DNA from: Epithemia pelagica
Taxonomy: Eukaryota > Protista > Bacillariophyta
Direction: 5' to 3'
Assembly (NCBI GenBank): GCA_946965045.2
Contig: OX337229.1
Location: 2,790,001-2,854,000 of the forward strand
DNA: 64,000 nt
Shown: positions 1,325-56,914 of the stretch, in pieces
Layout: every line of letters starts with the position of its first letter
Numbering within the stretch: the stretch's first letter is position 1
The notes under the pieces: generated by a model
Databases searched by the model: none
What the model was told of the DNA's origin: nothing
The model's input: only the letters and a program-made list of their open reading frames with translations
Translations under genes and position numbers: made by a program

Positions 1325-2089
1325 AGTATTAATACTTCCCGGTGTCGAGTCCTTTCAAGGAGGGACCGCCCGGCGAGGAGGGTAGAATGACGAGGAGGGC
1401 AATGGTCGAGGAGGGCGCACGCCCGACAAGACAATTGCCCGTCGAGTCATTCTCCCGACAAGCCGGGCGCGCCCGACGCGAGAGGACGGCCAGACACAGG
1501 GAAGTAGTAAACTTACTCCCTATCAAGCTGTGTAGGTAGTGAGAAATTCCTTGAAGCCATGTCACAAAGTGTCACACAAGTGTCACACACGAGGGGGAAA
1601 CCGCGCGACTCGCACGAAACTACTTCCCGGTTGTACAAAAAATTCCTACTGTAGTATAGAAATGTGAGACGAACTACCTACACAGTCTGGTATGGAGTTA
1701 GTATTAATACTTCCCGGTGTCGAGTCCTTTCAAGGAGGGACCGCCCGGCGCGGAGGGTAGAATGACGAGGAGGGCAATGGTCGAGGAGGGCGCACGCCCG
1801 ACAAGACAATTGCCCGTCGAGTCATTCTCCCGACAAGCCGGGCGCGCCCGACGCGAGAGGACGGCCAGACACAGGGAAGTAGTAAACTTACTCCCTATCA
1901 AGCTGTGTAGGTAGTGAGAAATTCCTTGAAGCCATGTCACAAAGTGTCACACAAGTGTCTCACAAGTGTCACACACGAAAGGGAAACCGTGCGACTCGCA
2001 CGAAACTACTTCCCGGTCGTACAAAAAATTCTTACTGTAGTATAAAAATGTGAGACGAACTACCTACACAGTCTGGTATGGAGTTAGTA
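1325..2089 (+). repeat. Head-to-tail dimer of a 375/386-bp non-coding, highly self-complementary unit
   Basis: Copy 1 is 1325-1699 and copy 2 is 1700-2085, followed by AGTA (2086-2089). The copies differ by about 7 substitutions and one extra 11-nt GTGTC(T)CACAA-type repeat. The duplicated 65/78-aa ORFs in the track reflect this repeat. Confidence 0.97.
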
Positions 2090-2492
2090 GTATACTCGTA
2101 CTCGTAGCCTCTTATGGCATTGTTATCTCGTCCGAAATCCCCCAAAATTCACAGTTCCCCCAGATCCCAATGCGCTTTTCCTATTATTAGGTAGTACTCC
2201 TAACTCCAAACTCCTACTCCAGTGTCCAGTGATCCATAATCCATAATCCTTCTGGTACGACAAAGTTAACTCGGGACCGAAAGGAGACTCACGAATGCTT
2301 CCTCTCCCCTCAGCCTTGAAGTTGACGGACTCAATTGTTATCGCCTGCCCGATCAAGACTACGACCAAAGAAAAGTAGATAGCCGTTGGAAACGCAGGGC
2401 GTCCCTCCCGGATCCTACCTTTTGGTATCATCTATCGCAATCGCATTTGGTATAAGATCCACCATACCAAAAACCAAAGTGTTGATGGCAAC

Positions 2493-4494
2493 ATGACAAT
2501 CCCAATCCCACTCACTTTGGCAGGCATAACAAAAACATCCGATCAACCAGAACCACCGTCACCAGCGTCCTTCTCCTACGACGCGCACCAACTGGCAACC
2601 ACGCACTTCAAGATCAACGTCAGAGAATCCCCAAAAACCCCAGAACCAACCAAGAGCTCACTCTTCCAATTCACTACGTTCAGACGGCAAAGGCTTGATC
2701 ACCTTTGGCGCCGTTCAGAGAATTTTAAGAGGATTTTTGCCGCTCCCGCAGTTCCCACAATTTTGCGGCCCCTCGCGTTTCCTCGGGTGCTCCAGGGGGG
2801 GGACCGTGGTCAAATCACGTTTGCTCCTGATCCAAGTGCTTCGGAGTTTGGTTCCAAAGTGGATTTGGCCTCGCGTGATACGTCGGATGTGTCGAGTAAT
2901 TTGGTATCGTTGTTCTGCCCGTTCAAGACAAGAAGCTTCTTTGCCTCGGCATCAAGAGGGTGGGAAACACCTTTTGCATCGACCCCAAGTGCTCCAAAGC
3001 CGGGGACCATGGCATGGGCGTCCCCCCTCATGACCTTGGCGTTGCCGGAGGCGTGTATATCATGAAGAATACTGCCTCAGCCTTTTGTTCACCCGTGGTT
3101 CCGATGGACATGGTCAGTCCTGAGGTAGTGAACAAACTGAAGGAGGAAAAGCACTCCTTGAGTGATTGGATCAAGAAGTTCTTGGTCCTGCGTCGACTTG
3201 ATCACATCAAGTCTGAAGGCGTTTCCTCCCCTTCTTTTGAAGATGAGGAGTCAAGGGTTGTGAAAGCAACCGTTCTTGATACTCCTATGACTACCACCAA
3301 GTCCATGCGAAAAACTTCCGTCACCTTTGCGGTTGACAACTTCTCGCCGCATCGGAAGATCCTCGCGGGCGATATCACCGAGGTTGTCCGTAGAGTCCAA
3401 CAAGACCCCTCCATCATCCCCACGGTGGTCCGTGAGGTAGAAGATTCAGTGATGGAGGCTGGCGAATTGATCCAGGCTCTATCAAAGGATCAATCCCAAG
3501 CCAAGAAGGAAACAGTGAATTCCGTGGAGTCGCTGGGCCTTCAACTTGAGAAATTGCAAATGGAGATTGGGCCGAGGGAGGAATTGCAGGAAGAATTCCA
3601 AGCCCCTACCCTGTGGGGTATCATCCAGGCCATCACCGGCTCCCTCTCCCAGTCCAAACCTTCTGTCCAGCTAGAGGCTACCGAGGAGGATAAAATTCTT
3701 CAAATTGAAGCAGACCTTTCGAAGACGGCGACCTTTGTGCGATCCCTGCAAATGGATACTTTGGCTCGCCTTCAGACGCTCCAAGCGGAATCAAAAGGAT
3801 GGGTTGACAGTCTCCGAACCAGTTTGGTCAAAGGATTACAAGGCCTGATTTCTCGTGTGGGAAATGTGGAACAACAGGTGGTGGCTATTTCCCAGCAGCA
3901 AGCTGCCTCTAGTTCCATGGGCTGGAGCAGGAGCCCGAGGCTCGCTCACTAGCGATGTCAATGCTGTCAATGTCCATTGGTTGTTGTCGTGAGCTCATCA
4001 ATTACTTCGACGAAACCATGAATGAGTTAATGACCAAATCGAAGTTCACCAAGAAAAAGGCCTTTAGTTTAGTGACTCAAGTGGTTCGGCGGTTCTTCCT
4101 TGACTTGTACAAGGTTCGAGCCCAGGTCTACTCATAGCTCTCTACAGCGGACAGTGCCGGGCAGTGTGCATGGATGTTGTATGGGGTTCTCCGAACCCAT
4201 GACATCATGACGGAGTATTCTCAGGCAAGGTTCAAAAACCACCCCTCGGTGTCTAGTGAATACATCCAATTCTTATCCACTAATTCAGGATTTGAATCGC
4301 TCAAGACGCTGGAAGACAAGGTTGATCATCACAAGCAAACGCTTGGTCAAATCACCAAGGATTGTCAAGCAGCGAAGAAGGCGGCGGAGACCGCGAATAG
4401 CACCGTTGATACGCTCAAGAAGGAATTACAAGAACTCAAACGCAACAACAAGAAGCGTCAGGGCAACTCTGGTGGTGCTGGTGACGCCTCTTGA
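2493..4494 (+). pseudogene. Interrupted gag-like ORF1 of the YR retrotransposon
   Basis: Pieces 2493-~2900, ~2900-3952 (C-x10-FC-x4-C-x5-H motif LCLGIKRVGNTFCIDPKCSKAGDH, then coiled coil) and 3955-4494 (in-frame TAG at 4135-4137, then LRTHDIM...FKNHPSVSSEYIQFL and a C-terminal coiled coil). Frame changes near 2900 and 3950. Confidence 0.65.
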
Positions 4495-4575
4495 AATCTA
4501 GGAGCATCTAAATTAGGACCGGATGATTCTACAATCGAAGACTCCTATTTAGATGCTCTTAGTGTAGCGTCGTCT

Positions 4576-5340
4576 GTGACCACAGCTACAGAAACATTTC
4601 CGTTCACCCCTCCCCGTGTCCGGCCCAACCCTCCGAGGGATATCTCCTGTCCTCGACCCACAAAGCGAATGGTGGACCGGGGGGAGCGTGTCTTCCGAGA
4701 AGATCTCTCTTGCCTATTGCTGGGGCAAAGCAGCTGCTATTGGGGCCTGGCCTTAAATCCAGGCGACTGGAGCGGCATTTACATGCTTAGCTCTGACTAT
4801 GCCGCTCGACGGGCTGATCCTTTCTGGCGGTGTGTCCCTGATTACTTCAAAGACAAGTTGTTTCTGGTCCCAAGTATCGACATGGTGTTGGGCCGCATGC
4901 TTATTTCTGTGGTTCTCCTCGAAGGCGATCCGGATTTCTTGTCCTCACAACTGGTGTCTGTGCCGCGTGATTGGGCTGTGCTTTTCTTATTGCCTTCCGG
5001 GTGGACTCGTCCGTTGTTGCCTGATGTGACCTGGATCACAGTCACTCACAAGCAATGCGGGGGTATTACCTCCGCTCGAGTCAACATTGGTAGACGGCAT
5101 GTCCCTCCCCTTCATTTCAAAACAACGGTGCGGCGGTCTATTTCTTCCGTCCTTGACCATTCGATTCGACCACAATACTGCACTGATGCCGGGCCTGACG
5201 AGCCACATTACTTGGGGGTCAGCAGTTTGTTGACTTGGGCCCTTGATTGACCTATTCTGCTCCCTACCACCTTCTTCAAATCTGGATGGGGCTACCGTCG
5301 ACTTTCCCCTGGGGAACTGGGGACTGCCTTTGATTTACCT
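4576..5340 (+). pseudogene. N-terminal region of pol, same frame as 5347-8475 and separated only by TGA at 5248-5250; possible degenerate C5-methyltransferase-like fold
   Basis: 4576 and 5347 are in the same frame. Reading through the TGA gives ...WALD*PILLPTTFFKSGWGYRRLSPGELGTAFDLPLWLDPSS... continuous with pol. Confidence 0.55.
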
Positions 5341-5346
5341 TTATGG

Positions 5347-8300
5347 TTGGATCCTTCCTCTCCTCCCTTTGTTTGGTGGCGCAGCCAATTGCTCTCCCCT
5401 CGCACGATTCCTATTAAGATCCCGTCTACCATTTTGTCCGCGGCCTTGCCTCACTTGCTCCCCGTGTTGGTCCATCACACTTGCGAGCATGCGTGTGTCA
5501 AACGTGACCCCACACCGCTTTCTCCTCCTACTCCCAAACGTGGTCGTTGGCTTCCTCTTTCTGTTGAAACGGTGCAAGATGGCGTCGTGGGTACGTGGCT
5601 CCCGGCCATCCGGAGCTTTCTCCCTCACTCTGCGTGGTTGGACGAGTCGTTGATTGCTGCGCAGGCCACCAAATCGGATGATGCCATTACCCCGTTTTGG
5701 CTTTGGGACAAGCGCATCCAGGGCATTTTCCCTTGGCTCACCACCCGCGCGTTGGACGGTTTCCGTCTCCTGGCTGTTCGCTGGTGGAGACGTTCCCTTT
5801 TTCGGGTTTTTACGGCTTATTTGCGCTCCCGATTTGGAGCCTCATGGTTGGATTTGTTGACTGTGGGCGCAAAGGCTCAAGGGGGGGGGGATATTTTCTC
5901 TTTGCAAGACGTCCGCCTCGCCGGTTGTTCCGTTCTGTCTCAGCTGCTTGGCGCCTCTTGGTGGGAATGGGATCATGGATCCTCACTAATCTTCTGGCGG
6001 TGGAATGGCCTGGAGCAACAACGGAACGCGCACTTTGGCCAACCCATTCGTGTGGCAGCCCCTCTCCCCTCCAACAAACGGCCTCAACGTCCTCCCGCTC
6101 CCGACTCGGTCCCACGGGTGGCCGCAAAACTTGCTAAAGTGTTGCATCGGGGCTTCTTCGATCAAGGACAACCGATCCAGAGTCTTACGGATTTCTTTGA
6201 TGTTCCAAAGGGCGATTCGGATATCCGGATGGTCTATAACGGAACTAGTAGTGGGCTCAATGACGCCCTTTGGGCGCCAAACTTTTGGCTCCCCACCGCT
6301 GAGTCTTCCTTGCGATTACTCACCAGCGAGTCCTACTGTGGGGATATGGACCTGGGTGAAATGTTTCTCAACTTCCCCATGGACGTTAATCTCCGTCCAT
6401 ACGCTGGAGTTGATCTCCACCCTATCGTCCATGCTCTTCCCGCGGATGCGCTGACCCACCGCAACTCGGACCAAGTTCGTTGGAATCGTCTTTTCATGGG
6501 CATGCTCCCCAGCCCGTATCACTCTGTCGAACAATTTTACCTTGCCGAGGAAGTTGCAATTGGGTCCCCCTCGGAACCGGATAACCCATGTGGATTTGAT
6601 GAGATCCGTTTCAACATACCAGGATCTTCAGACTACAACCCAGTGCTTCCCTGGACCATGAAGTGGAACACCAAATCTGATTCTATTGCTGGAGACTCCA
6701 TCACCTACATGGATGATATTCGTATAGTGGGATCCTCTGCGGAGAATGCCTGGCAGGTAGCCCGAAGGCTCCAATACTTCGGTATCCAAGACGCACCTAG
6801 AAAGCGTCGCCCTCCTTCAAAAACGCCTGGAGCATGGGCTGGCTCAGTGCAACATATCACCAAAGACGCCGTGTCTAAAACGGTAACTCAAGCCAAATGG
6901 GATAAAGGTCGAAACATCATCGCGCCTTATGTGGAGGCGTTCAAACAAACCGACACCCTCCCAACCTTCTCCCACAAACAGATGCAGCGAGATGTGGGTT
7001 TTCTAGTCCATCTTGCCCTAACTTACGCCGCCCTTATGCCTTTCTTAAAGGGTTTTTACCTCACAATGAACAATTGGAGGGGAGGAAGCAATGCTGATGG
7101 TTGGAAACTGAGTGCACGAGAATGGATCTCGTTACTCCAAGTCAAGATGGCCGATCAAGAAGTCAATTCAATTTGCGGCCTGCTGGAGGACGATGAAGAC
7201 AATCGTGACACCAAATCCACAACACCAACTCAGCGCAGCAGTGCAAAGCCTCCTCAACAAATTCAAGCGGTTCCTAGGCTGCGTTCAGATATCAAAGCTA
7301 TTGCCATCATGTTCGAAACCTCCAATCCGCCCATCATTCAAGTTCGCAGCTCTTCCATCTTTGTTGCTATCTACGGTGCAGGAGATGCGTCTGGAACTGG
7401 GTTTGGCTCTGCTATCCTCCTACCTCAAAAGAGCTTATCTTACAGGATTGGCGTATGGCGACATGACGATGTGGTTGGTGAATCCTTGAATTGGAAAGAA
7501 TTCACAAACTGTGTCGAGGCAATGGAGGAAGAGGCGGAAAAGGGAAACCTCTCATCAACGGAGCTCTTCTTCTTCACAGACAATACTACCGTAGAGAGAT
7601 GTTTCTACAAAGGTTCATCGTCAAGCGAAAAATTACTGGACCTAATAATGCGGCTTCGACGACTGGAAATGCGCTATTCCCTCCGCTTGCACATCTCTCA
7701 TGTGTCGGGCAAACGCATGATCGCCTGGGGAGTAGATGGCATTTCCAGAGGACAACTTAATGAAGGAGTCATGGCCGGCAAGCCAATGCTTTCTTTCATA
7801 CCCCTACACAAAACACCTATGCAAATGTCACCGACACTATTTGAATGGGTGAAGTCCTGGTTGGGCCCCAAGACTGAACTACTTACCCCTATGGACTGGT
7901 TCACCACGGGCCATGACATACGGGGATGGACTCTCCCATCCGAATACAATCAACTGTCCCTGCCAATCCTCAGGCCAGGACATTTTGTATGGAGTCCTCC
8001 ACCGGGAGCAGCAGACGTGGCAATCGAGCAACTTCGTAAGGCCCGGCACAAGCGTCAAAGATCTACCCACATCTTTTTCTGTCAACGCCTGCTGACTCCC
8101 AAGTGGTACAAGCAACTACACAAAGCTTGCGATTTAGTAATTGAAATACCGGCAGTGACGAGATTTTGGCCAAAGGAAAACTTCGAACCCCTCATCATTG
8201 GTTTTGTTTTCCCTTTCCTTAGGTCAAAACCCTGGCAACTCCGAGGTACACCTAAGATGTTCGCAATTGAGCGGACTCTGCGAAAACTGTGTCCGGAGGA

Positions 8301-8475
8301 TGAAGTGGCAGGACGGAATCTTCTGTGGAAATTTCTCGTTCAAGCTTGGAAAATGGGATCCATGTCAGAAGTCATGGTGTCCCGAGTGTTATTCTTTGAA
8401 AGAGGACACAAGTTTCTACATCGCGAGCAAGTTTACCCTAAAAGAAGAAAACGACGACGATCGACTGGTAGCTAG
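5347..8475 (+). CDS. Pol of YR retrotransposon: reverse transcriptase + RNase H + C-terminal MT-like domain
   Basis: RT motifs DMDLGEMFLNF, MGMLPSPY, TYMDD. RNase H motifs GDASGTGFG, FFTDNTTVE, HVSGKRMIAWGVDGISRG. C-terminal FVWSPPP...KARHKR segment resembles the DIRS MT-like domain. Confidence 0.9.
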   Translation: MDPSSPPFVWWRSQLLSPRTIPIKIPSTILSAALPHLLPVLVHHTCEHACVKRDPTPLSPPTPKRGRWLPLSVETVQDGVVGTWLPAIRSFLPHSAWLDESLIAAQATKSDDAITPFWLWDKRIQGIFPWLTTRALDGFRLLAVRWWRRSLFRVFTAYLRSRFGASWLDLLTVGAKAQGGGDIFSLQDVRLAGCSVLSQLLGASWWEWDHGSSLIFWRWNGLEQQRNAHFGQPIRVAAPLPSNKRPQRPPAPDSVPRVAAKLAKVLHRGFFDQGQPIQSLTDFFDVPKGDSDIRMVYNGTSSGLNDALWAPNFWLPTAESSLRLLTSESYCGDMDLGEMFLNFPMDVNLRPYAGVDLHPIVHALPADALTHRNSDQVRWNRLFMGMLPSPYHSVEQFYLAEEVAIGSPSEPDNPCGFDEIRFNIPGSSDYNPVLPWTMKWNTKSDSIAGDSITYMDDIRIVGSSAENAWQVARRLQYFGIQDAPRKRRPPSKTPGAWAGSVQHITKDAVSKTVTQAKWDKGRNIIAPYVEAFKQTDTLPTFSHKQMQRDVGFLVHLALTYAALMPFLKGFYLTMNNWRGGSNADGWKLSAREWISLLQVKMADQEVNSICGLLEDDEDNRDTKSTTPTQRSSAKPPQQIQAVPRLRSDIKAIAIMFETSNPPIIQVRSSSIFVAIYGAGDASGTGFGSAILLPQKSLSYRIGVWRHDDVVGESLNWKEFTNCVEAMEEEAEKGNLSSTELFFFTDNTTVERCFYKGSSSSEKLLDLIMRLRRLEMRYSLRLHISHVSGKRMIAWGVDGISRGQLNEGVMAGKPMLSFIPLHKTPMQMSPTLFEWVKSWLGPKTELLTPMDWFTTGHDIRGWTLPSEYNQLSLPILRPGHFVWSPPPGAADVAIEQLRKARHKRQRSTHIFFCQRLLTPKWYKQLHKACDLVIEIPAVTRFWPKENFEPLIIGFVFPFLRSKPWQLRGTPKMFAIERTLRKLCPEDEVAGRNLLWKFLVQAWKMGSMSEVMVSRVLFFERGHKFLHREQVYPKRRKRRRSTGS

Positions 8476-9793
8476 CGAGTGGCGGTCCCGAACCAAAGAC
8501 ATATCTGAAGATTTCGTTCGAGCCAGAAAGGGAGATCACCTAATGACCCCCTTCGAATGCGACTTGTGCATCTTTAGAAAGCTTCGGCACGTCAACCCAG
8601 ACCCTCAACAACCTCAAGACCAATATCTCCTCAAGTGCATCCGAAGAATGAACCTAGACGCATTCTGGAGCCGCGCTTCCAGCACGGTCAAACAGAACCA
8701 CTTACTCGCCACCCGAATGATTGACCGCTCCTCCAAGGTTGGAATCCCTTATGGTCCTTTCATTCGACGTCAGCCCTTCCCTTCGTTCGATCATTGCGGA
8801 TACCACACCGCTTACCTAATGCTTGATGCCTCCCTGGATCAAGGACGATATCACAAGGATCACAAACAATTCGACTCCATTCGAAAAATACGATCCACTT
8901 ATTCAAACTTTATCAGAACAACCACTTCCACAATTGTTGGCCAACTACCCCTCACTCTTCTAGACAATGACGTAAAATCTTCATTACGCATTGGCTCCGA
9001 CGAAAGTGGTTCCTTGTGGTTTGCCCTATTCACCGAAGGTTGTAAACGGAGAATGGGCCAGGACTGGAGACCGGACCAAGCTATTACCCCGGAATTAATG
9101 ATCGCTCTCCTTGATCATTTGGAACACCTCATTATCAATGCATCTCGACAGGAAGACTCCTATTTCATGATTATGGCTGGAGCGTACTTTATCACTTGCT
9201 TCGTCCTTTCCTTGCGTGGTCCAGAGGGCCTCCTGTTGAATCTAGAAGGCATTTTGAAGCACGGCGATGCCCAATCGCACAAGGACTGCGTCGTCATTGT
9301 TCTATGGGGACAAGTAAAAGGCGAACATATCGAACGATCTCATCTCCTCCCTTCGATCAACACGACTGGGTCCGGACTGCAAGTTCGACGATGGATAAGA
9401 AGAGCAGTGGTCCTCGCTCAAGATAACTCAAGGAGCAGAGGACCTTTGATGCTCCACAAAAACGGTGACAACATCAAACCAAGACAACTGGACGACCTCC
9501 TTCATCAAACACTCACGGCCATCTATTCCACCTCTCCAGAACTGTTCCCCTCCACCGCCATCAGAAACGAAGAAGACATTGCTTTGAAATATTCTGCCTT
9601 CCGATCCTTCCGCAGAGGCTCCAACACAAGAGCCAAAGAAATGGGTGTCTCCGTCCCAGACACAGAAGTCGTCAACAGATGGCGTGGCCGTGACAAGGCG
9701 GGGACCAGAAAACAAGGAGGTCCCATCGACCAGATGTATTCAGACCTCTCCCTTTTGATTGCACCATTCATCCGGTACACCAAAAGCATGTAA
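8198..9793 (+). CDS. Tyrosine recombinase (probable ATG 8300), overlapping the 3' end of pol in another frame
   Basis: Catalytic-type motifs LSLRGPEG (R), RSFRRG (HxxR equivalent), NRW and QMYSD (Y). Cys-rich N-terminus FCGN...PCQKSWCPEC and FECDLC. Confidence 0.88.
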   Translation: MVLFSLSLGQNPGNSEVHLRCSQLSGLCENCVRRMKWQDGIFCGNFSFKLGKWDPCQKSWCPECYSLKEDTSFYIASKFTLKEENDDDRLVASEWRSRTKDISEDFVRARKGDHLMTPFECDLCIFRKLRHVNPDPQQPQDQYLLKCIRRMNLDAFWSRASSTVKQNHLLATRMIDRSSKVGIPYGPFIRRQPFPSFDHCGYHTAYLMLDASLDQGRYHKDHKQFDSIRKIRSTYSNFIRTTTSTIVGQLPLTLLDNDVKSSLRIGSDESGSLWFALFTEGCKRRMGQDWRPDQAITPELMIALLDHLEHLIINASRQEDSYFMIMAGAYFITCFVLSLRGPEGLLLNLEGILKHGDAQSHKDCVVIVLWGQVKGEHIERSHLLPSINTTGSGLQVRRWIRRAVVLAQDNSRSRGPLMLHKNGDNIKPRQLDDLLHQTLTAIYSTSPELFPSTAIRNEEDIALKYSAFRSFRRGSNTRAKEMGVSVPDTEVVNRWRGRDKAGTRKQGGPIDQMYSDLSLLIAPFIRYTKSM

Positions 9794-10693
9794 CGAACAC
9801 TCAAGATTCTCAACGGGGGGTTTTCGGGACCAACAAGCTACCTTGGGCTGACATGGCAAAGCCCTGGTATCTTGCTCTGGGAGCTTCTACTCGGGTTCAA
9901 CGAGAGGTGACCGCCTGCACTTCGGGGACGACGATTGTATGGTGCTACCTGATCGTCCGCCCCGAGCTCAGTGGAGGGATCACGGGATCCTCTTGTTCGT
10001 TCCTAGGGTTTTGGCTTTTGGATCTGGTTCCCTCACTTTCATCTGAAAGCGACGACCCTTGCTGGTGAAGGATTCCATCCTTAACCCCCCACATTACGAT
10101 TCAACTTAACAGTTGTGATCGGTTGAGTTTAAAAATCTTAAATTATCCTTTCTTTCTCTTCTCTCTTATTGGGGTACTCCGGACATGGATTGCCGCTTGG
10201 ACCGTGACAAGGTGAAGAACATTGGCTAAGGGGAAGGAGCCTGACTGAGACTCAACAAAGGCCCATAGCATACGAGTACTCGTACGAGTAGATTTGGTGT
10301 GATTGTAGAGAAATGACTACTACTCGTACAAGTACAAGTAGACAAACAAAAACGCTTTCAAAGGCCAACGGTAGCGACAAAGAAGGTGGCAAGGTCTCAA
10401 GTCCAAAGGCTTTTCCGATTCCCGAGTCCAGATCTCTATTCGTAATTTGTAGTCTCTCTTCCGTATGGTGTATGGTATCTCTCGGACTCGTCGGAGTGAG
10501 CATCAGATCAGAGATGGACGTGTTGGTTGCACAGCTAGCAGACGTGAGCCCTCTATCTAATGTTTCATGGGTTCTTCTTTCAATCAACCTATTGTAATTG
10601 TACGCGTGAGCTCTCCTGGTGATCCATCATAGAGAGAGATATTAATATTAATAGCCACGCCTATCCTACTCGTGAGTTGTACAGTCGTAAGTC

Positions 10694-10905
10694 TACTTTA
10701 ATAGCTGAGGGTGGACGAGGAGGAGCTAGGGTGTGAGGAGTGGCTAAACTCCGAGAAGGGCAATAGCGACGAGGAGTGGACTGCCCCTTTGAGATCGGCG
10801 TAAGCGGATCGAGGGGGCAGTCCACGACGAGAAGCTATTGCCCGACGAGGAGTTAAGCCACGAGGAGCGCCCTGCGACGAGGAGTCCCCCGGGGCTATTA
10901 AAGTA
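10694..10905 (+). ncRNA. 212-nt rod-like hairpin with repeated tandem-GA internal loops (putative structured RNA or ssDNA element)
   Basis: Nested stems: TACTTTAATAGC/GCTATTAAAGTA, GGGTGGAC/GTCCCCC, AGGGTGT/GCGCCCT, GTGGCTAAACTCC/GGAGTTAAGCCAC, GGGCAATAGC/GCTATTGCCC, GTGGACTGCCCC/GGGGCAGTCCAC, apical GC-GTAA-GC. The inverted-repeat structure is certain; expression as RNA is not shown. Confidence 0.6.
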
Positions 10906-12211
10906 TGTTAGCTTCCTTTGTCACGAGGAGTCGTGCCAGCGCACCCTAGGTAATTTTCGGTCCTCTGAATGGATACTTAGTAGTCGTAAGCCTAATTAGT
11001 TTTAAACAATTAAGCTTGCCCTACTTTCGATATGGCACGAGGTAATCTTTATTTTTTTTTTAAATAACCGCGTCACTTAAGTGACCTCATCCGATTATAT
11101 CGGATGATTTATAACGCTTTATGTCTAAGTATCATTTGTCTCACAATTATTGGATGCCAATCAAACTCCGAGGCGTGCTTGTTGCATAAACAGTGTGACA
11201 GAATACTTAGATCTTCCATTCCCCAATCCTCTCGCGACCCGACCACGAGCGACACAAGACAACACAGAACACAGCAGCATGCACCAACACAATGGGAACT
11301 CCTACACAACACTAGAATAAAAAATCAAAGTACAGTAATTTTTGGGGCTTAGGTAGTGGGAGTGTGGGGAGTGACTTACTCCTCAGTGAGTGCTCAGTGA
11401 GTGGGGAAGGGTAGGACGACGAGTGGTGAAGGTAGTCATATACGAGTATGTAGGAGGACGAATATTCCCGCGACAAGGTGATAACCCGTAAATGATCGAA
11501 AGGAATAAGGATTCGTACTTCGTACAAGCACTCCTTCTACTGTCTTAGTCCCGAATTATGAATACCCATCTCCTTTCTCCTTTTGGATATTGTTTCATGT
11601 TATGGATTATTACGCTCTCGACCTGTCTTCATCGAATGAGAAACTTTAGAGAGTACCCAGAGCATATTGGATGTTGGAACTTGCACATGACTTCTCATTC
11701 ACGAATCCAGTTGGGGCTAACGACATTCTACATCACACTGTACTAGTTGGTGGCATCCGTTCCCCTACCATCTTTCCAACATTACCAGGCACATGTTTCA
11801 CTGGACGGACGTATACTCCTTATCTATGTTATTTCTAAGCGCTGGGGATTTCAATGTATGACAACGAGAAATCGGCATTGATCTTTACGTGACAGAAACT
11901 ACGCCAGCTCGGTAGTATTCCCATCGCTCTCGACCATCTCACATTGGTTTTGTCATGCTGGTTTTGTATTAACAAAGCCAATGATTCATGGCAGGGCAAA
12001 TCCCGAGTCATACCAATTGGCAAGGCGTTTTTGTCCCCAGAAAAGGCGGTTGTTCAAAAATGTATTGACAGCCTGGGTATTCATAAAATATACTAGACAC
12101 CACGGAACAAAAAGGTCGTCGGATTGCTCCTTGCCCACAACAAACAACAATAACAACAACAAAGAAGAAGAGAGTGTTTCGTTTATCGTGCCTACTACTG
12201 AACTAAAAGCC

Positions 12212-13621
12212 ATGAGTCGAAACGAGTACACGGAAAATGTCGATGGACCTTCATCCAACACTGGTGGCAGCACGGTAGCTCGAGACAAGGCTGCCAAATT
12301 GCGAGAAAAGAAAAAGTTGCGAAAATCATCCTCGATTCGATCCATGCGGTCCTTGTCCAGTACCACGAGTGAACGAACGAAAAAGTCGACGACGACGACA
12401 CGGAGAATCAAGACACGAAACAGCAGCAAGACGTCGTCCTCCTCTCGCAAGCGGTCCTCCAGTGTTCCCAACCGCAAGGATCCCGAAGGCATGACCGCCT
12501 CCTCCATCATGATGTCCCCCAAAGTCCGATCCCATGATGACGATCAAGAACGATTGGGCAAGGCGCAAGAACGCATTCAGTCCATGTTTTCCGAACAACG
12601 CAAAAAGGAACAAGATCGACGCAAGGAACAATGCACTCCTCAAAGACACCGACCATCCTCGCAAACCAATGCTACTACTCCAAGAGGTGTCGAAGAACGA
12701 AAAAAGTTGGCCCAATTGTGGCATGAACGATTGGGTGAACCCGATCGAGCCACCATGAAGGCTTTGGTGCACAAGAAATCACAGGGATGCGACCTTGATC
12801 TGGAAGATGTGGATTTGTTGTCCTGGGGGAATCTTCCAGCCATGACAGTGTCGTCATGTTCGGAATCAAGTGATGGCAGTGACGACAAGAGTGCCTTTCA
12901 AGTCGTATCCAAACGGACAGCCGGAACAGAAGACTTTTCTGCTTTGCGACGATCAGCTTCCAGACGTTCGATTTGCAGTACACCTCTCAGGAGGACGGGC
13001 TTTGCTGGCGACCAACAACACGATTTGAGCTTTTCCTCTTTCTCTTCCCATGGGGCGTTGGAGAAGATCGATGCAGACGAGAGTTTCACCAGCATTAAAA
13101 AGTCATCTACTCCAAAGACCAAAAAGAAATCGAGACCATCACTCTCCAAGGCTCTTGAAGCACAAAAGGGTGCCTCCTCTTCAGAGGACGAATGCGAAAG
13201 CAAGGAGAGGAGCAAGGCAAGCTCCAAGAAGTCATCAAGATCGAGTAGTACGAGACGGCGACGTGATTCCAGTCTTGGAAGACACAGCATTGCTGGCACT
13301 TCGGCGGCATCGGCTACCTTGGCGGACACCAAGAAGCATCGCAAGTCATCCAAGAAAAAGCTCCACAAGGATAGTGAAACGGCATCGCTGACCAGCCGGA
13401 GCAAGACCAGCAGTAAAGATCCATTCGGCGTACCACCGTCCAGGGGACCACAAGGATATGTGAACCCGGAACTCCAACAAAAGCTGAAACTATACAAAAA
13501 GTACCGCAAGTCGACCTCTTCTCTTTGCTCAGCCAACAGCAGTACCTGTGGAGAGAGCGTCAGTCATCGAAGTGAGGACCTCGAACACATTTTTCCAAAT
13601 TTCGTTGTACACGGAAGCTAA
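12212..13621 (+). CDS. Uncharacterised Ser/Lys/Arg-rich, probably disordered protein
   Basis: Long ORF (track 11981-13621); likely ATG 12212 (MSRNEY). No recognisable domain. Confidence 0.65.
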   Translation: MSRNEYTENVDGPSSNTGGSTVARDKAAKLREKKKLRKSSSIRSMRSLSSTTSERTKKSTTTTRRIKTRNSSKTSSSSRKRSSSVPNRKDPEGMTASSIMMSPKVRSHDDDQERLGKAQERIQSMFSEQRKKEQDRRKEQCTPQRHRPSSQTNATTPRGVEERKKLAQLWHERLGEPDRATMKALVHKKSQGCDLDLEDVDLLSWGNLPAMTVSSCSESSDGSDDKSAFQVVSKRTAGTEDFSALRRSASRRSICSTPLRRTGFAGDQQHDLSFSSFSSHGALEKIDADESFTSIKKSSTPKTKKKSRPSLSKALEAQKGASSSEDECESKERSKASSKKSSRSSSTRRRRDSSLGRHSIAGTSAASATLADTKKHRKSSKKKLHKDSETASLTSRSKTSSKDPFGVPPSRGPQGYVNPELQQKLKLYKKYRKSTSSLCSANSSTCGESVSHRSEDLEHIFPNFVVHGS

Positions 13622-54829: not shown

Positions 54830-55029
54830 TGAGTTTGCCATTTTGGTGTCATGCAGTGTATCATGACCGTGGTTTCCTAAACCACCGGCCCGGATAACTA
54901 TAGACAATAGAGTACAAGTATGAAAAGAACGGCTCACTGTGGGGGAATTTTTCGGCCCCCGGAGCCGGAGTCCGTAGATTGTAGATTGGGTTTGTTGTCA
55001 ACGAAACTATGACTACGAGTAGACACGTA

Positions 55030-56914
55030 CGAGCTCCATCAATCGATATGTTGGCGCTCAGTTTCCCGTGCTTCACCTCGGTGAAACTTCCGGCCCTACG
55101 AGATTCACTTCACCATACATTTTCCTAAAGTAAAATGAATTGCCCCACATCTCTCGTACCTCGTACCTCGCACTCCCACCGATGAACCTTTCACCATGAC
55201 GTGGAGGCGCTTCCCCTTTCTGTACGAGAATTAAAAGTACTAGGACTACGAGTAGATCAAACTGTACAAACGGCTTCCTAATGATAAGCCTATCTTAGGT
55301 TGCCACCATCACTGCTGTTTGTTGTCCTCGTTGTTATAGGGGATTGGTTCACTCGGCCGAAACGAGGAGTTCGTTGTTGCGTTTGGTGTCGTTGTCGCGG
55401 CACAGGGTTGTCTCGTTCGGCCAAAACAAGGCGTTGATTGTTTCGTTTCTTGCAGAACCGTAGAAATGAAAGAAACAGAGGTGCCCATGCCATCCTGAGA
55501 GCGAGAGAGGACGGAGACTTCGAGTCAGACGGAGAAGTAGAAACAGACGATGAACTATAGTTTGATTGTTGCATGTTGTCTTCATTGCCTTGTTGTATCT
55601 AGTTGTCGATTGTTGCGATCGTTGTGGTTGTCGTGGAAAGTTTTGTTTGCTTGATGGCTGCGACTGTTGCTGTTGTCGAACCAAGGATTTGATTGTAGTA
55701 GTTGATTGTTGTGTTCGTCATGTCTCTTCTATTTGATTGTTGCCCTAATCAATGCGAGTTTTCGATTCGCTGAGGCCGTGAGAAAGATGGAGTTGATTGT
55801 CGCGTGTTGTTATCGTTGTTGTCGTCGGCGCGTGTTGTCGGTGGTGTCGCCGAGTGTTTCGTTCGGTGACAGCAAGTAGTTGATTGTTGCATTGGGGTTG
55901 TCGAGAGTGTCGTGCGGCGGCAGCGAGTAGTTGATTGTCGCGTTGTCGCATGTCATTGTCGTCGTTGCCGCTTGTCGTTGTTGCCGCTTGCTGTCTTGTC
56001 GCATGTCGTTGTCGTCGCATTTCGTTGTCGCCGCTTGCTGTAGGGCACAGCCGGAACGATGAGTCAATTGTTGAGTATGGTGTTGTTGTGATGGTCGCCA
56101 CTCGTTGTCGCTGTCGTTGACACCGCTCGTTGTTGCTGTCGCTACTTGTTGTTTCCGCTTTGCCTCGTTTGGGCTGTAGAACTGTGGAACCAAAAGAAAC
56201 ATAGCGCATTTGATTGTTGCGTTGTTGTTTGGTGTCGTTGTTGTGCCACAAAGTTTTCCGAACACAAGGGAGAAGGAGAAGGACGACCACTTGGTCGGAT
56301 AGCCGCCACCGCAGCTTCGTGGCATCCACTCCTGGATTGACTTGATGTTGCATCCATATTGCTTGTTCTTGTTGTTGCTTTTAGAGAGCTTGTGTAAGGG
56401 GTTGCTTGTTGTTGTCGTTCCTTGGAAGCCAGAGTTTGTTTTTGTTGTTGTTGTTATTGTCGAAACGATCCGTCTGATTGCTGTGAGCGGTTTTCGCGAC
56501 TCTGACATGCCTCAATGAGCTATATCAAAGCTTCCAATGTCCTCCCACCCCGCAATCTTCGTTCATCCCATCATCATTTGACTCCAATCGTTGTCATCTC
56601 CTTGCTTCCTTCCAGCCCAAAATATGTAAGACTTCAGAACCTTGCCGTAGGTCCATCAAACAACCCAACTCATCTCCGCCCTTTTCACCCTTCACGGTAC
56701 ACATGAAGATCAAGCTTCCTGGATGGTCGGCGGAGTGCTAGCACCTTTCGTTGGAGGTGCACAGCGGTTCTTGTTGTCCATGGTGGTGTTATGCAGTGCA
56801 AAATGACCGTTGTGCTCTTCCTACGAAGCTAGAATCACTATAGAGAAAACAGAAACAGTGGGGGCCTGAAAAGCACGGGCAACTGAGCGCCAACATATCG
56901 ATTTATGGAGCTCG
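55030..56914. mobile_element. Non-autonomous TIR element B (1885 bp), 44-bp TIRs, TA flanks
   Basis: TA|CGAGCTCCATCAATCGATATGTTGGCGCTCAGTTTCCCGTGCTT (55030-55073) versus the reverse complement of 56871-56914|TA: 2 mismatches in 44. Interior is homologous to element A. Confidence 0.85.

Follow-up and report, generated by a model that had tools for sequence, protein, structure and literature searches.

A miniature, probably Crypton-type transposon with a structured 5' end in the diatom Epithemia pelagica

We analyzed a 64,000-nucleotide stretch of the genome of the diatom Epithemia pelagica (contig OX337229.1, positions 2,790,001 to 2,854,000; called "the window" below, with positions counted from its first letter). 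It contains a head-to-tail pair of repeat units, 375 nt long at 1329-1703 and 386 nt long at 1704-2089, both on the forward strand. The family to which these units belong, family 1, is a dispersed, young mobile element. The unit is probably a miniature, non-coding, internally deleted and non-autonomous transposon of the Crypton type, moved as DNA by a tyrosine recombinase (YR), with the pair in the window representing stacked insertions. Autonomous members of the group, about 5.3 kb in length, combine a 5' hairpin rod and a 3' end (about 100-130 nt) with a single gene for a predicted recombinase, which is interrupted by an intron; the 375/386-nt unit would retain just the two element ends. Our argument draws on the mobility of the unit, on natural empty and filled sites, on a target consensus, on ends shared with recombinase-encoding elements, on the fold of the recombinase and on covariation in the rod.

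The paired units and their junctions

The 375-nt period is absent from the Tandem Repeats Finder list and was seen by a repeat search and by BLAST. Direct repeats pair 1325-1589 with 1700-1964 at 99% identity and 1567-1706 with 1953-2092 at 94%. The two copies differ by seven substitutions and by one additional 11-mer of the tandem repeat TGTCACACAAG, which has 2.8 copies at 1560-1589 and 3.8 copies at 1935-1975 on the forward strand. Variation in the number of these 11-mers accounts for the 375- and 386-nt length classes. A single substitution, at 1376, falls in the 5' arm of the unit (arm 1, described below), where it lies inside a CGAGGAG loop. A first-pass annotation of the window had already described a head-to-tail dimer of 375-nt units with AGTA at every junction and about seven substitutions, one of them in a loop of arm 1. 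The repeat search and the alignment of the copies confirm this description, with the second unit 386 nt long. We rejected the idea that the pair is a heterodimer of two old subfamilies: the two length classes differ by one 11-mer, and units are otherwise 98-100% identical.

The tetranucleotide AGTA is present at 1325-1328, 1700-1703 and 2086-2089, which are the left, middle and right junctions. Family-1 units begin with TTAATAC and end with GGAGTTAGTA. At the left junction (1325-1336), a target-derived AGTA and the element's TTAATACT together make a perfect 12-bp palindrome, AGTATTAATACT, in which the crossing point would lie at TAG/TA (the slash marking the crossing). The identical palindrome occupies the unit-unit junction (1700-1711) and equals the joining site expected of a circular form of the element. 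At the right junction (2086-2096) the AGTA of the element is followed by GTA-TACT of the target, the pre-insertion site having the form AGTA-N3-TACT. Read on the reverse strand, the element's 3' end GTTAGTA (2083-2089) is TACTAAC, the yeast branch-point consensus.

Copies in the genome

The search covered 60.5 Mb in 23 contigs. The first 24 nt of the unit have 103 matches, and at least 45 near-full copies are 94-100% identical to copy 1 of the window. Mean pairwise identity among 48 full units is 97.8%. The first-pass annotation had suggested a genome-wide BLAST search, and the unit proved to be dispersed rather than confined to a single locus, with copies present as monomers, at least seven dimers and mixed chains. 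The roughly 50 other copies have unrelated flanks, and none shares the flanks of the window within 1.5 kb.

The exact unit-unit junction, with zero mismatches, is found at seven loci. Chains that mix families occur at L081, L082, L020 and L035. Such chains could not have been copied from a single template, and therefore insertion beside a resident end is real.

Several loci deserve separate mention. At L047 (C1:460500-463800), a pair of family-1 fragments, covering unit positions 1-212 and then 1-206, is interrupted by sequence resembling a terminal inverted repeat (TIR). The sequence that ends the pair resembles the 49-nt inverted-repeat arm (window 55025-55073) of TIR elements located at 46-57 kb of the window, and the interruption is probably a later insertion of a TIR element. 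The right flanks of L009 and L025, as well as L056 and L069, contain further families that share the first 25-35 nt of the unit and are fully divergent thereafter. Their starts read TTAATA[AC]TTCCCGGTGTCGAGTCC or TTCTACTTCCCGC, and of all cis sequences, the one at the extreme 5' end seems to have been conserved most widely.

Empty sites, filled sites and the target

A repeat resembling a miniature inverted-repeat transposable element (MITE) provided natural insertion sites. Four empty copies of it read CTTAGTA followed by AATTAATT, and two filled copies hold exactly one unit at TTAGTA, of 374 nt in one case and 385 nt in the other. The two insertions look like independent hits on one site. Comparison of empty and filled sites therefore shows that one unit was gained without target duplication and that the core was present once before insertion and twice after it. 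The host repeat itself (L018:1374-1500 and 1875-2074; L077-L080) is about 330 bp long, has its first 30 nt inverted at the far end and is present in at least 30 copies in the genome. An apparent 10-nt repeat at L018 was discarded as a target-site duplication (TSD), the empty sites showing it to be a feature of the host MITE. Flanks searched for a classical TSD extending beyond AGTA gave sporadic matches only.

Forty-six independent left flanks yield the consensus R-(G>T,A)-T-A-G-T-A, whose five final positions are each conserved in 42-45 flanks. The right ends are more variable. Among 40 deduplicated right ends, the sequence after GGAGTT is AGTA in 23, AGT plus one other nucleotide in 11 and AG plus two others in six. 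Of 41 independent right flanks, 10 have TAC at +8 after GGAGTT, an enrichment with P of about 6e-10. The flank consensus and the enrichment of TAC therefore give a target approximating RGTAG/TA-N3-TAC, a form with which the window's site, AGTA-GTA-TACT, agrees.

When the two ends of the unit are joined, the perfect 12-bp palindrome AGTATTAATACT results, and it is recreated at each left junction and each unit-unit junction. Two other families have a like layout, family 2 reading AGTA-AGTC-TACT and family 1b AGTA-AGAC-TACT. These ends have the features described for Cryptons: short direct repeats at both ends, no TIRs and no TSD. The first-pass annotation had taken the shared core without TSD, together with the tandem copies, as a trace of integration by a tyrosine recombinase. 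The empty and filled sites support that view, as do the related autonomous elements, which are predicted to encode such an enzyme.

Recombinase-encoding relatives

Family 2, a rod-bearing dispersed repeat of the same superfamily, is represented in the window by a 749-nt miniature element at 10688-11436 on the forward strand, with its rod at about 10700-10900 and a virtual joining site AGTA-AGTC-TACT. At locus L081, a 5.35-kb element has family-2 ends (5' 282 nt at 96% identity, 3' about 95 nt at 90-94%). Behind it, in head-to-tail order, come a full family-2 unit and a family-1 unit, with TAG/TA at all joints. The occurrence of two rods 5,350 nt apart had raised the possibility that family 2 is a long terminal repeat (LTR), which we rejected: the pair consists of the 5.35-kb element and a separate full family-2 unit.

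The recombinase gene at L081 has two exons, its open reading frame (ORF) being interrupted by a GTAAGT..CAG intron. Inspection by eye identified an LRGPE motif with the first arginine at the end of exon 1, as well as RxxR, H and Y motifs. The exons were treated separately, and the results for relatives, profile and fold refer to the second exon alone. A library of 1.84 billion proteins contains 86 relatives of this exon. Among 41 aligned relatives, K57, R187, H210 and Y219 are near-invariant; five of the 41 reach PF00589, and the exon profile matches XerA. The exon-2 AlphaFold (AF2) model has a pLDDT of 81. In a Foldseek search with this model, QRICH1 was on top, followed by Cre, Xer, Flp and transposon integrases, and VIA-align gave Z scores of 9.5 to Cre 151-319 (the catalytic domain) and 8.6 to XerA. 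The DUF3504 domain of QRICH1 is a domesticated Crypton recombinase (Kojima and Jurka 2011, PMC3212892). The nearest Atlas clusters were Integrase, Tyr-recombinase and NDC10_II, and a word-based protein search returned four nameless matches. On this profile and modelled fold, the autonomous relatives are predicted to encode a tyrosine recombinase.

Among the ORFs of the 5.35-kb element there is no reverse transcriptase (RT) or other transposase; Pfam gave no match for any of them, although Pfam also missed the RT of the retroelement described below. By eye, the other ORFs have only low-complexity products rich in Ser, Lys or Pro. Relatives that lack an RT and have an intron-bearing recombinase gene argue for a DNA route. 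The recombinase exon is encoded at no fewer than 36 places in the genome, at six of them with 99-100% identity. At four loci the downstream exon forms one and the same open frame of 254 aa; two further loci have frames of 254 and 275 aa with 99% identity to it.

Both ends of family 2 are shared with an autonomous element; for family 1, the ends found in autonomous elements are related ones only. At L020, a family-1c 5' end (83% identity) directly follows a family-1 unit and runs on into internal sequence. Seven loci have a family-1-like 5' rod with internal sequence and, on the same strand, a recombinase exon 2.27-2.67 kb farther downstream; the 5' end at these loci is 83-84% identical to family 1 over 212 nt. 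L030 has another recombinase gene, and about 1.2 kb downstream of it is a 3' end (about 100 nt) with 80% identity to that of family 1; a family-1 dimer is 65 nt away from this end. We had considered rolling-circle replication or reverse-strand target-primed reverse transcription as the source of partial copies that keep the 5' end, and largely set both aside: the 1-212 pieces are 5' ends of autonomous elements or interrupted copies. In the autonomous family-1c element at L020 (reverse strand), the sequence between the rod and the first ORF includes a (GGAA)n microsatellite, some 530 nt long, at about 2255-2780 of the reverse complement.

Fold of the unit

As a circle, the unit has a minimum free energy of -171 kcal/mol, compared with -108 +/- 6.5 in dinucleotide shuffles (z = -9.6); under DNA parameters z is -7.4. 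The complementary strand folds less well (-156 vs -171 kcal/mol). The predicted structure contains two hairpins, arm 1 (unit 1-182) and arm 2 (unit 183-375), with the unit boundary exactly between them. Both hairpins close within one linear unit, and therefore the fold needs no circularization.

Arm 1 (1329-1510, forward strand; second copy 1704-1885) is a 182-nt rod of 8-10 bp helices separated by strand-specific purine loops, in which CGAGGAG faces CGACAAG or CGTCGAG. Arm 2 (1511-1703, forward strand; second copy 1886-2089) has a 30-bp closing stem, formed by 1511-1540 with 1673-1702, around some 130 weakly paired nucleotides. The hairpin that the first-pass annotation placed in the second half of the unit is thus present as far as its 30-nt arms are concerned, which are 83% complementary, but arm 2 is not a rod. 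The accompanying claim that the unit closes into a full viroid-sized rod when circularized fails, since the fold closes in the linear unit and only unit 1-182 is rod-like. Across 48 copies, diversity in the interior of arm 2 is about twice that of the rod and closing stem.

A rod is common to families 1, 1b, 1c, 2 and 2b, in all of which the 5' end consists of helices of 8-13 bp. In all five families the loop sequence CGAGGAG of one arm has CGACAAG, CGTCGAG or CGACGAGAAG as its counterpart in the other arm, always on the same strand. Between families, the sequences of the stems vary and those of the loops stay. In the alignment of families 1, 1b and 1c, 95.9% of cells are paired, and 11 pairs are altered on both sides, compared with 3.0 +/- 1.5 in shuffled and 1-3 in slid controls. 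The loops may be written as C-G, G.A, A.A, G-C, G.A, A.G, G-C; the complementary strand would have pyrimidine mismatches at these positions. We infer that the rod is a cis signal recognized by the machinery of the element.

The tip of the rod, at unit 89/90 (window about 1417-1418), is the breakpoint in three independent deleted or truncated copies (L015, L057 and L068), in which unit 1-89 is fused to 184 or 333 or stops there. The palindrome tip of the rod appears to be a deletion hotspot.

The neighboring retroelement and other features

An 8-kb retroelement lies at 2248-10264 on the forward strand, 158 nt from the dimer. Its ORF at 5347-8475 encodes an RT with a YMDD motif and an RNase H-like region, and its ORF at 8198-9793 is tyrosine recombinase-like, with motifs LRGPEG, FRSFRRG and NRWR..Y. 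The element looks DIRS-like. Its boundaries at 2248 and 10264 were set by a copy of 89% identity at C7:1862108-1870765. No terminal repeats were found in it, and Pfam gave no match for any of its ORFs, that of the YMDD RT included.

The ends of this retroelement, CCTTCTGGTACG and CAACAAAGGCCC, are unrelated to the unit, and comparison of the unit with 2248-10264 revealed no similarity above chance words. None of the roughly 50 other unit copies has sequence of the neighbor alongside within 1.5 kb; at the C7 copy of the neighbor, a unit is 4.7 kb away and on the opposite side. BLASTP of the neighbor's YR-like ORF against the Crypton-type exon found no significant similarity. The unit is therefore not a terminal repeat of this RT element, given the unrelated flanks of other copies and the boundaries of the neighbor at 2248 and 10264. 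We also rejected derivation of the unit from the DIRS-like element as its non-autonomous form, the two having no shared cis sequence and no co-occurrence.

Downstream of the family-2 copy, a 546-aa ORF at 11981-13621 (forward strand) has a weak gag_pre-integrase match (E = 0.006) and is probably part of a copia-like element. Elsewhere in the genome there are 20 Helitron_like_N matches, unrelated to the family-1 finding, many of them in open frames of 1,300-1,900 aa, which suggests that the genome contains intact Helitrons.

Proposed mechanism

Most likely, the unit is excised as a circle, or copied into one, in which the joined ends form the 12-bp palindrome AGTATTAATACT. A recombinase supplied in trans, probably by a related family, would then cross this site with a genomic R-G-TAG/TA-N3-TAC. 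A crossover within the shared TAG(TA) would explain why there is no target duplication and why the core is single before insertion and present at both ends after it. With every inserted copy, the joining site is rebuilt whole on the left side and as a half site on the right. Joining sites recreated in this way would make resident copies preferred targets and lead to head-to-tail stacking, and the window dimer is best read as one such stack.

Several observations weigh against this mechanism or the Crypton assignment. The junctions are asymmetric, the left always being AGTA and 17 of 40 right ends being shortened to AGT or AG, and a two-strand exchange over an overlap of 6-8 bp would not obviously give such asymmetry. 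The identity shared between element and target goes down to TAG, which is below the typical length of an overlap region. A purely double-stranded mechanism leaves the strand-specific loops of the rod unexplained. Pfam has no match for the recombinase exon itself. None of the autonomous elements at the loci examined matches the ends of family 1 at more than 95% identity; the best values are 83-84% for the 5' end and 80% for the 3' end, which makes the mobilizing enzyme of family 1 a putative one. The circle is likewise a deduced form, none having been observed.

Some of these difficulties could be removed if the recombinase acted on a folded single strand, namely the plus-strand rod with its stacked G.A mismatches. 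We consider this version rather doubtful; it is argued by analogy with the bacterial systems discussed below. The joining site would then lie in an intrastrand duplex between both hairpins, one strand would be exchanged at TAG/TA, and the product would be resolved by replication. Action on a single strand would account for the strand-specific loops, the sharp single crossing point, the left/right asymmetry and the cassette-like chains.

Alternative explanations

For the pair in the window alone, local duplication, unequal crossing-over or integration of a dimeric circle could replace the second insertion. The dimers at L002 and L030, whose units are 100% and 99.7% identical apart from the 11-mer indel, favor such an origin, and in a family as young as this one (mean identity 97.8%) the 98.1% identity of the window copies is not decisive. 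However, each window unit is nearer to a copy at another locus (99.2% and 98.9%, respectively) than to its partner. Dimers at six loci, including the C13 pair, show four different orders of the length classes, and the mixed-family chains demonstrate that insertion beside resident ends does happen. In addition, about one quarter of the analyzed loci adjoin another such element, whereas element ends make up about 0.5% of TAGTA sites, of which the genome is estimated to have 68,000 by extrapolation from this one window. We therefore regard an origin other than a second insertion as unlikely for this dimer. A more general alternative is rolling-circle transposition of the HUH type (Helitron-, IS91- or Replitron-like), in which a Rep protein nicks 3' of TAGTA at either end of the element and tandems arise when the terminator is read through. 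It would fit the oriented insertion directly 3' of a fixed short motif without duplication, the "fuzzy" right end, the hairpins at the ends and the partial copies retaining the 5' end. Helitron Rep genes are present in the genome, and the junction presumably resembles the CRESS nonanucleotide. Short direct terminal repeats are also known from Replitrons (PMC10288648), but Replitrons were undetected in diatoms (PMC10288648), and the ends described here are not of the Helitron type (5'-TC / CTRR-3'). The autonomous elements with like ends have a predicted tyrosine recombinase and no Rep, and by coordinate comparison none of the 20 Helitron_like_N places is beside a unit locus. Read-through on a single template cannot yield mixed-family chains, and most of the "truncated" copies are the 5' ends of autonomous relatives or copies interrupted later. 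A search for Viral_Rep gave no match, but its control was also silent, and hence the search is uninformative. With the evidence so distributed, we consider an HUH mechanism highly improbable.

The first-pass annotation had favored a viroid- or retrozyme-like RNA satellite, an RNA circle that is copied by the RT of the neighboring retroelement and integrated by the neighbor's recombinase. The unit does have strong structure and viroid size, its strand-specific loops are what a single-stranded functional form would have, an element with both RT and YR is 158 nt away, and there is no target duplication. The same annotation reported no hammerhead core, in agreement with Rfam, of which no family, ribozyme or other, matched either strand of 1200-2250 at E<=10. 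The borrowing of RT and YR from the neighbor is contradicted by the unrelated ends and sequence of that element, with which the unit shares nothing, and by the other copies, which are not beside such elements. Where an element has the rod and ends in common with the unit, it lacks an RT and has kept an intron. Arm 2 is no rod, and a circle is unnecessary for the fold. An RNA satellite is accordingly a very remote prospect, on a par with the HUH mechanism.

Comparison with known systems

Cryptons (Goodwin et al. 2003, as cited by Kojima and Jurka 2011, PMC3212892) have no TIRs; they have 4-6 bp direct repeats at both ends, which are regarded as recombination substrates, and a circular intermediate has been proposed (PMC3212892). 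CryptonS elements, mostly with TATGG ends, occur in oomycetes and one diatom, and non-autonomous Crypton derivatives are known from a bug and a fish (PMC3212892). The elements described here are similar in having a predicted tyrosine recombinase as the sole recognizable enzyme, without RT, TIR or target duplication, and in having a short direct end repeat as the putative crossover substrate, with a circular intermediate again proposed. Their short derivatives outnumber the autonomous copies and, in family 2, share both ends with them. They differ in their core, (T)AGTA instead of the TATGG that many CryptonS elements have, and in their joined ends, which make a perfect 12-bp palindrome. Their 5' end is a covarying rod, some 180-210 nt long, in which strand-specific purine loops recur at regular intervals; the Cryptons of the literature consulted are described without structured ends. 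The elements also form head-to-tail chains, mixed-family chains included. Our assignment to the Crypton type is made at the level of fold and features and applies to the type rather than to a clade, CryptonS or other. Three features have no description in the searched literature and appear to be new for Cryptons: a rod that covaries, is strand-specific and has G.A-rich loops; a palindromic joining site; and chains of mixed families.

DIRS and Ngaro elements, the type to which the window neighbor seems to belong, also have a tyrosine recombinase and no target duplication, and a circular intermediate has been proposed for them. In contrast to the relatives of the unit, which lack RT, they have RT/RNase H and long terminal or split repeats. 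Viroids, retroviroid-like elements and retrozymes resemble the unit in size, strong secondary structure and tandem genomic copies. The differences are that no ribozyme was found in the unit, that only half of it is rod, that it has no LTR, primer-binding site or polypurine tract and no 4-bp target duplication, and that its relatives are DNA transposons. Among HUH elements (Replitrons, Helitrons and IS91), similarities include oriented insertion by a short motif, hairpins near the ends, an imprecise right end, the short direct terminal repeats of Replitrons and, in most families, the absence of duplication (PMC10288648), but the ends of the unit go with a predicted tyrosine recombinase and not with Rep.

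The tandem organization and the rod also recall two bacterial systems. Integron attC sites with IntI, and CTX-phage attP(+) with XerCD, are cases in which tyrosine recombinases act on folded single strands. Common features are an imperfect palindrome conserved in structure and not in sequence, with strand-specific unpaired bases; a single-point crossover by a conserved triplet; and circles that insert head to tail into arrays. Those systems are bacterial, however, the rod described here is much longer and its mismatches are periodic, and the resemblance is one of logic only.

Significance

For annotation of this genome, a DNA-integrated viroid-like replicon is a false lead and can be removed, and the recurrent "rod hairpin" signals, tandem arrays and mixed chains now have an explanation. 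In the literature consulted, Crypton transposition is described as a proposed mechanism, not as one reconstituted in vitro, and Crypton ends are described as unstructured. The genome of E. pelagica supplies an abundant young 375-nt substrate, a 12-bp joining site, a target consensus and natural empty and filled sites, and intact genes for the predicted recombinase, 99-100% identical between copies, are also at hand. With substrate, sites and recombinase genes available, reconstitution of the reaction and the role of the purine-mismatch rod become approachable. Should the recombinase prove to act on the folded single strand, family 1 and its relatives would provide the first case of a eukaryotic transposon whose single-strand recombination site resembles that of integrons.

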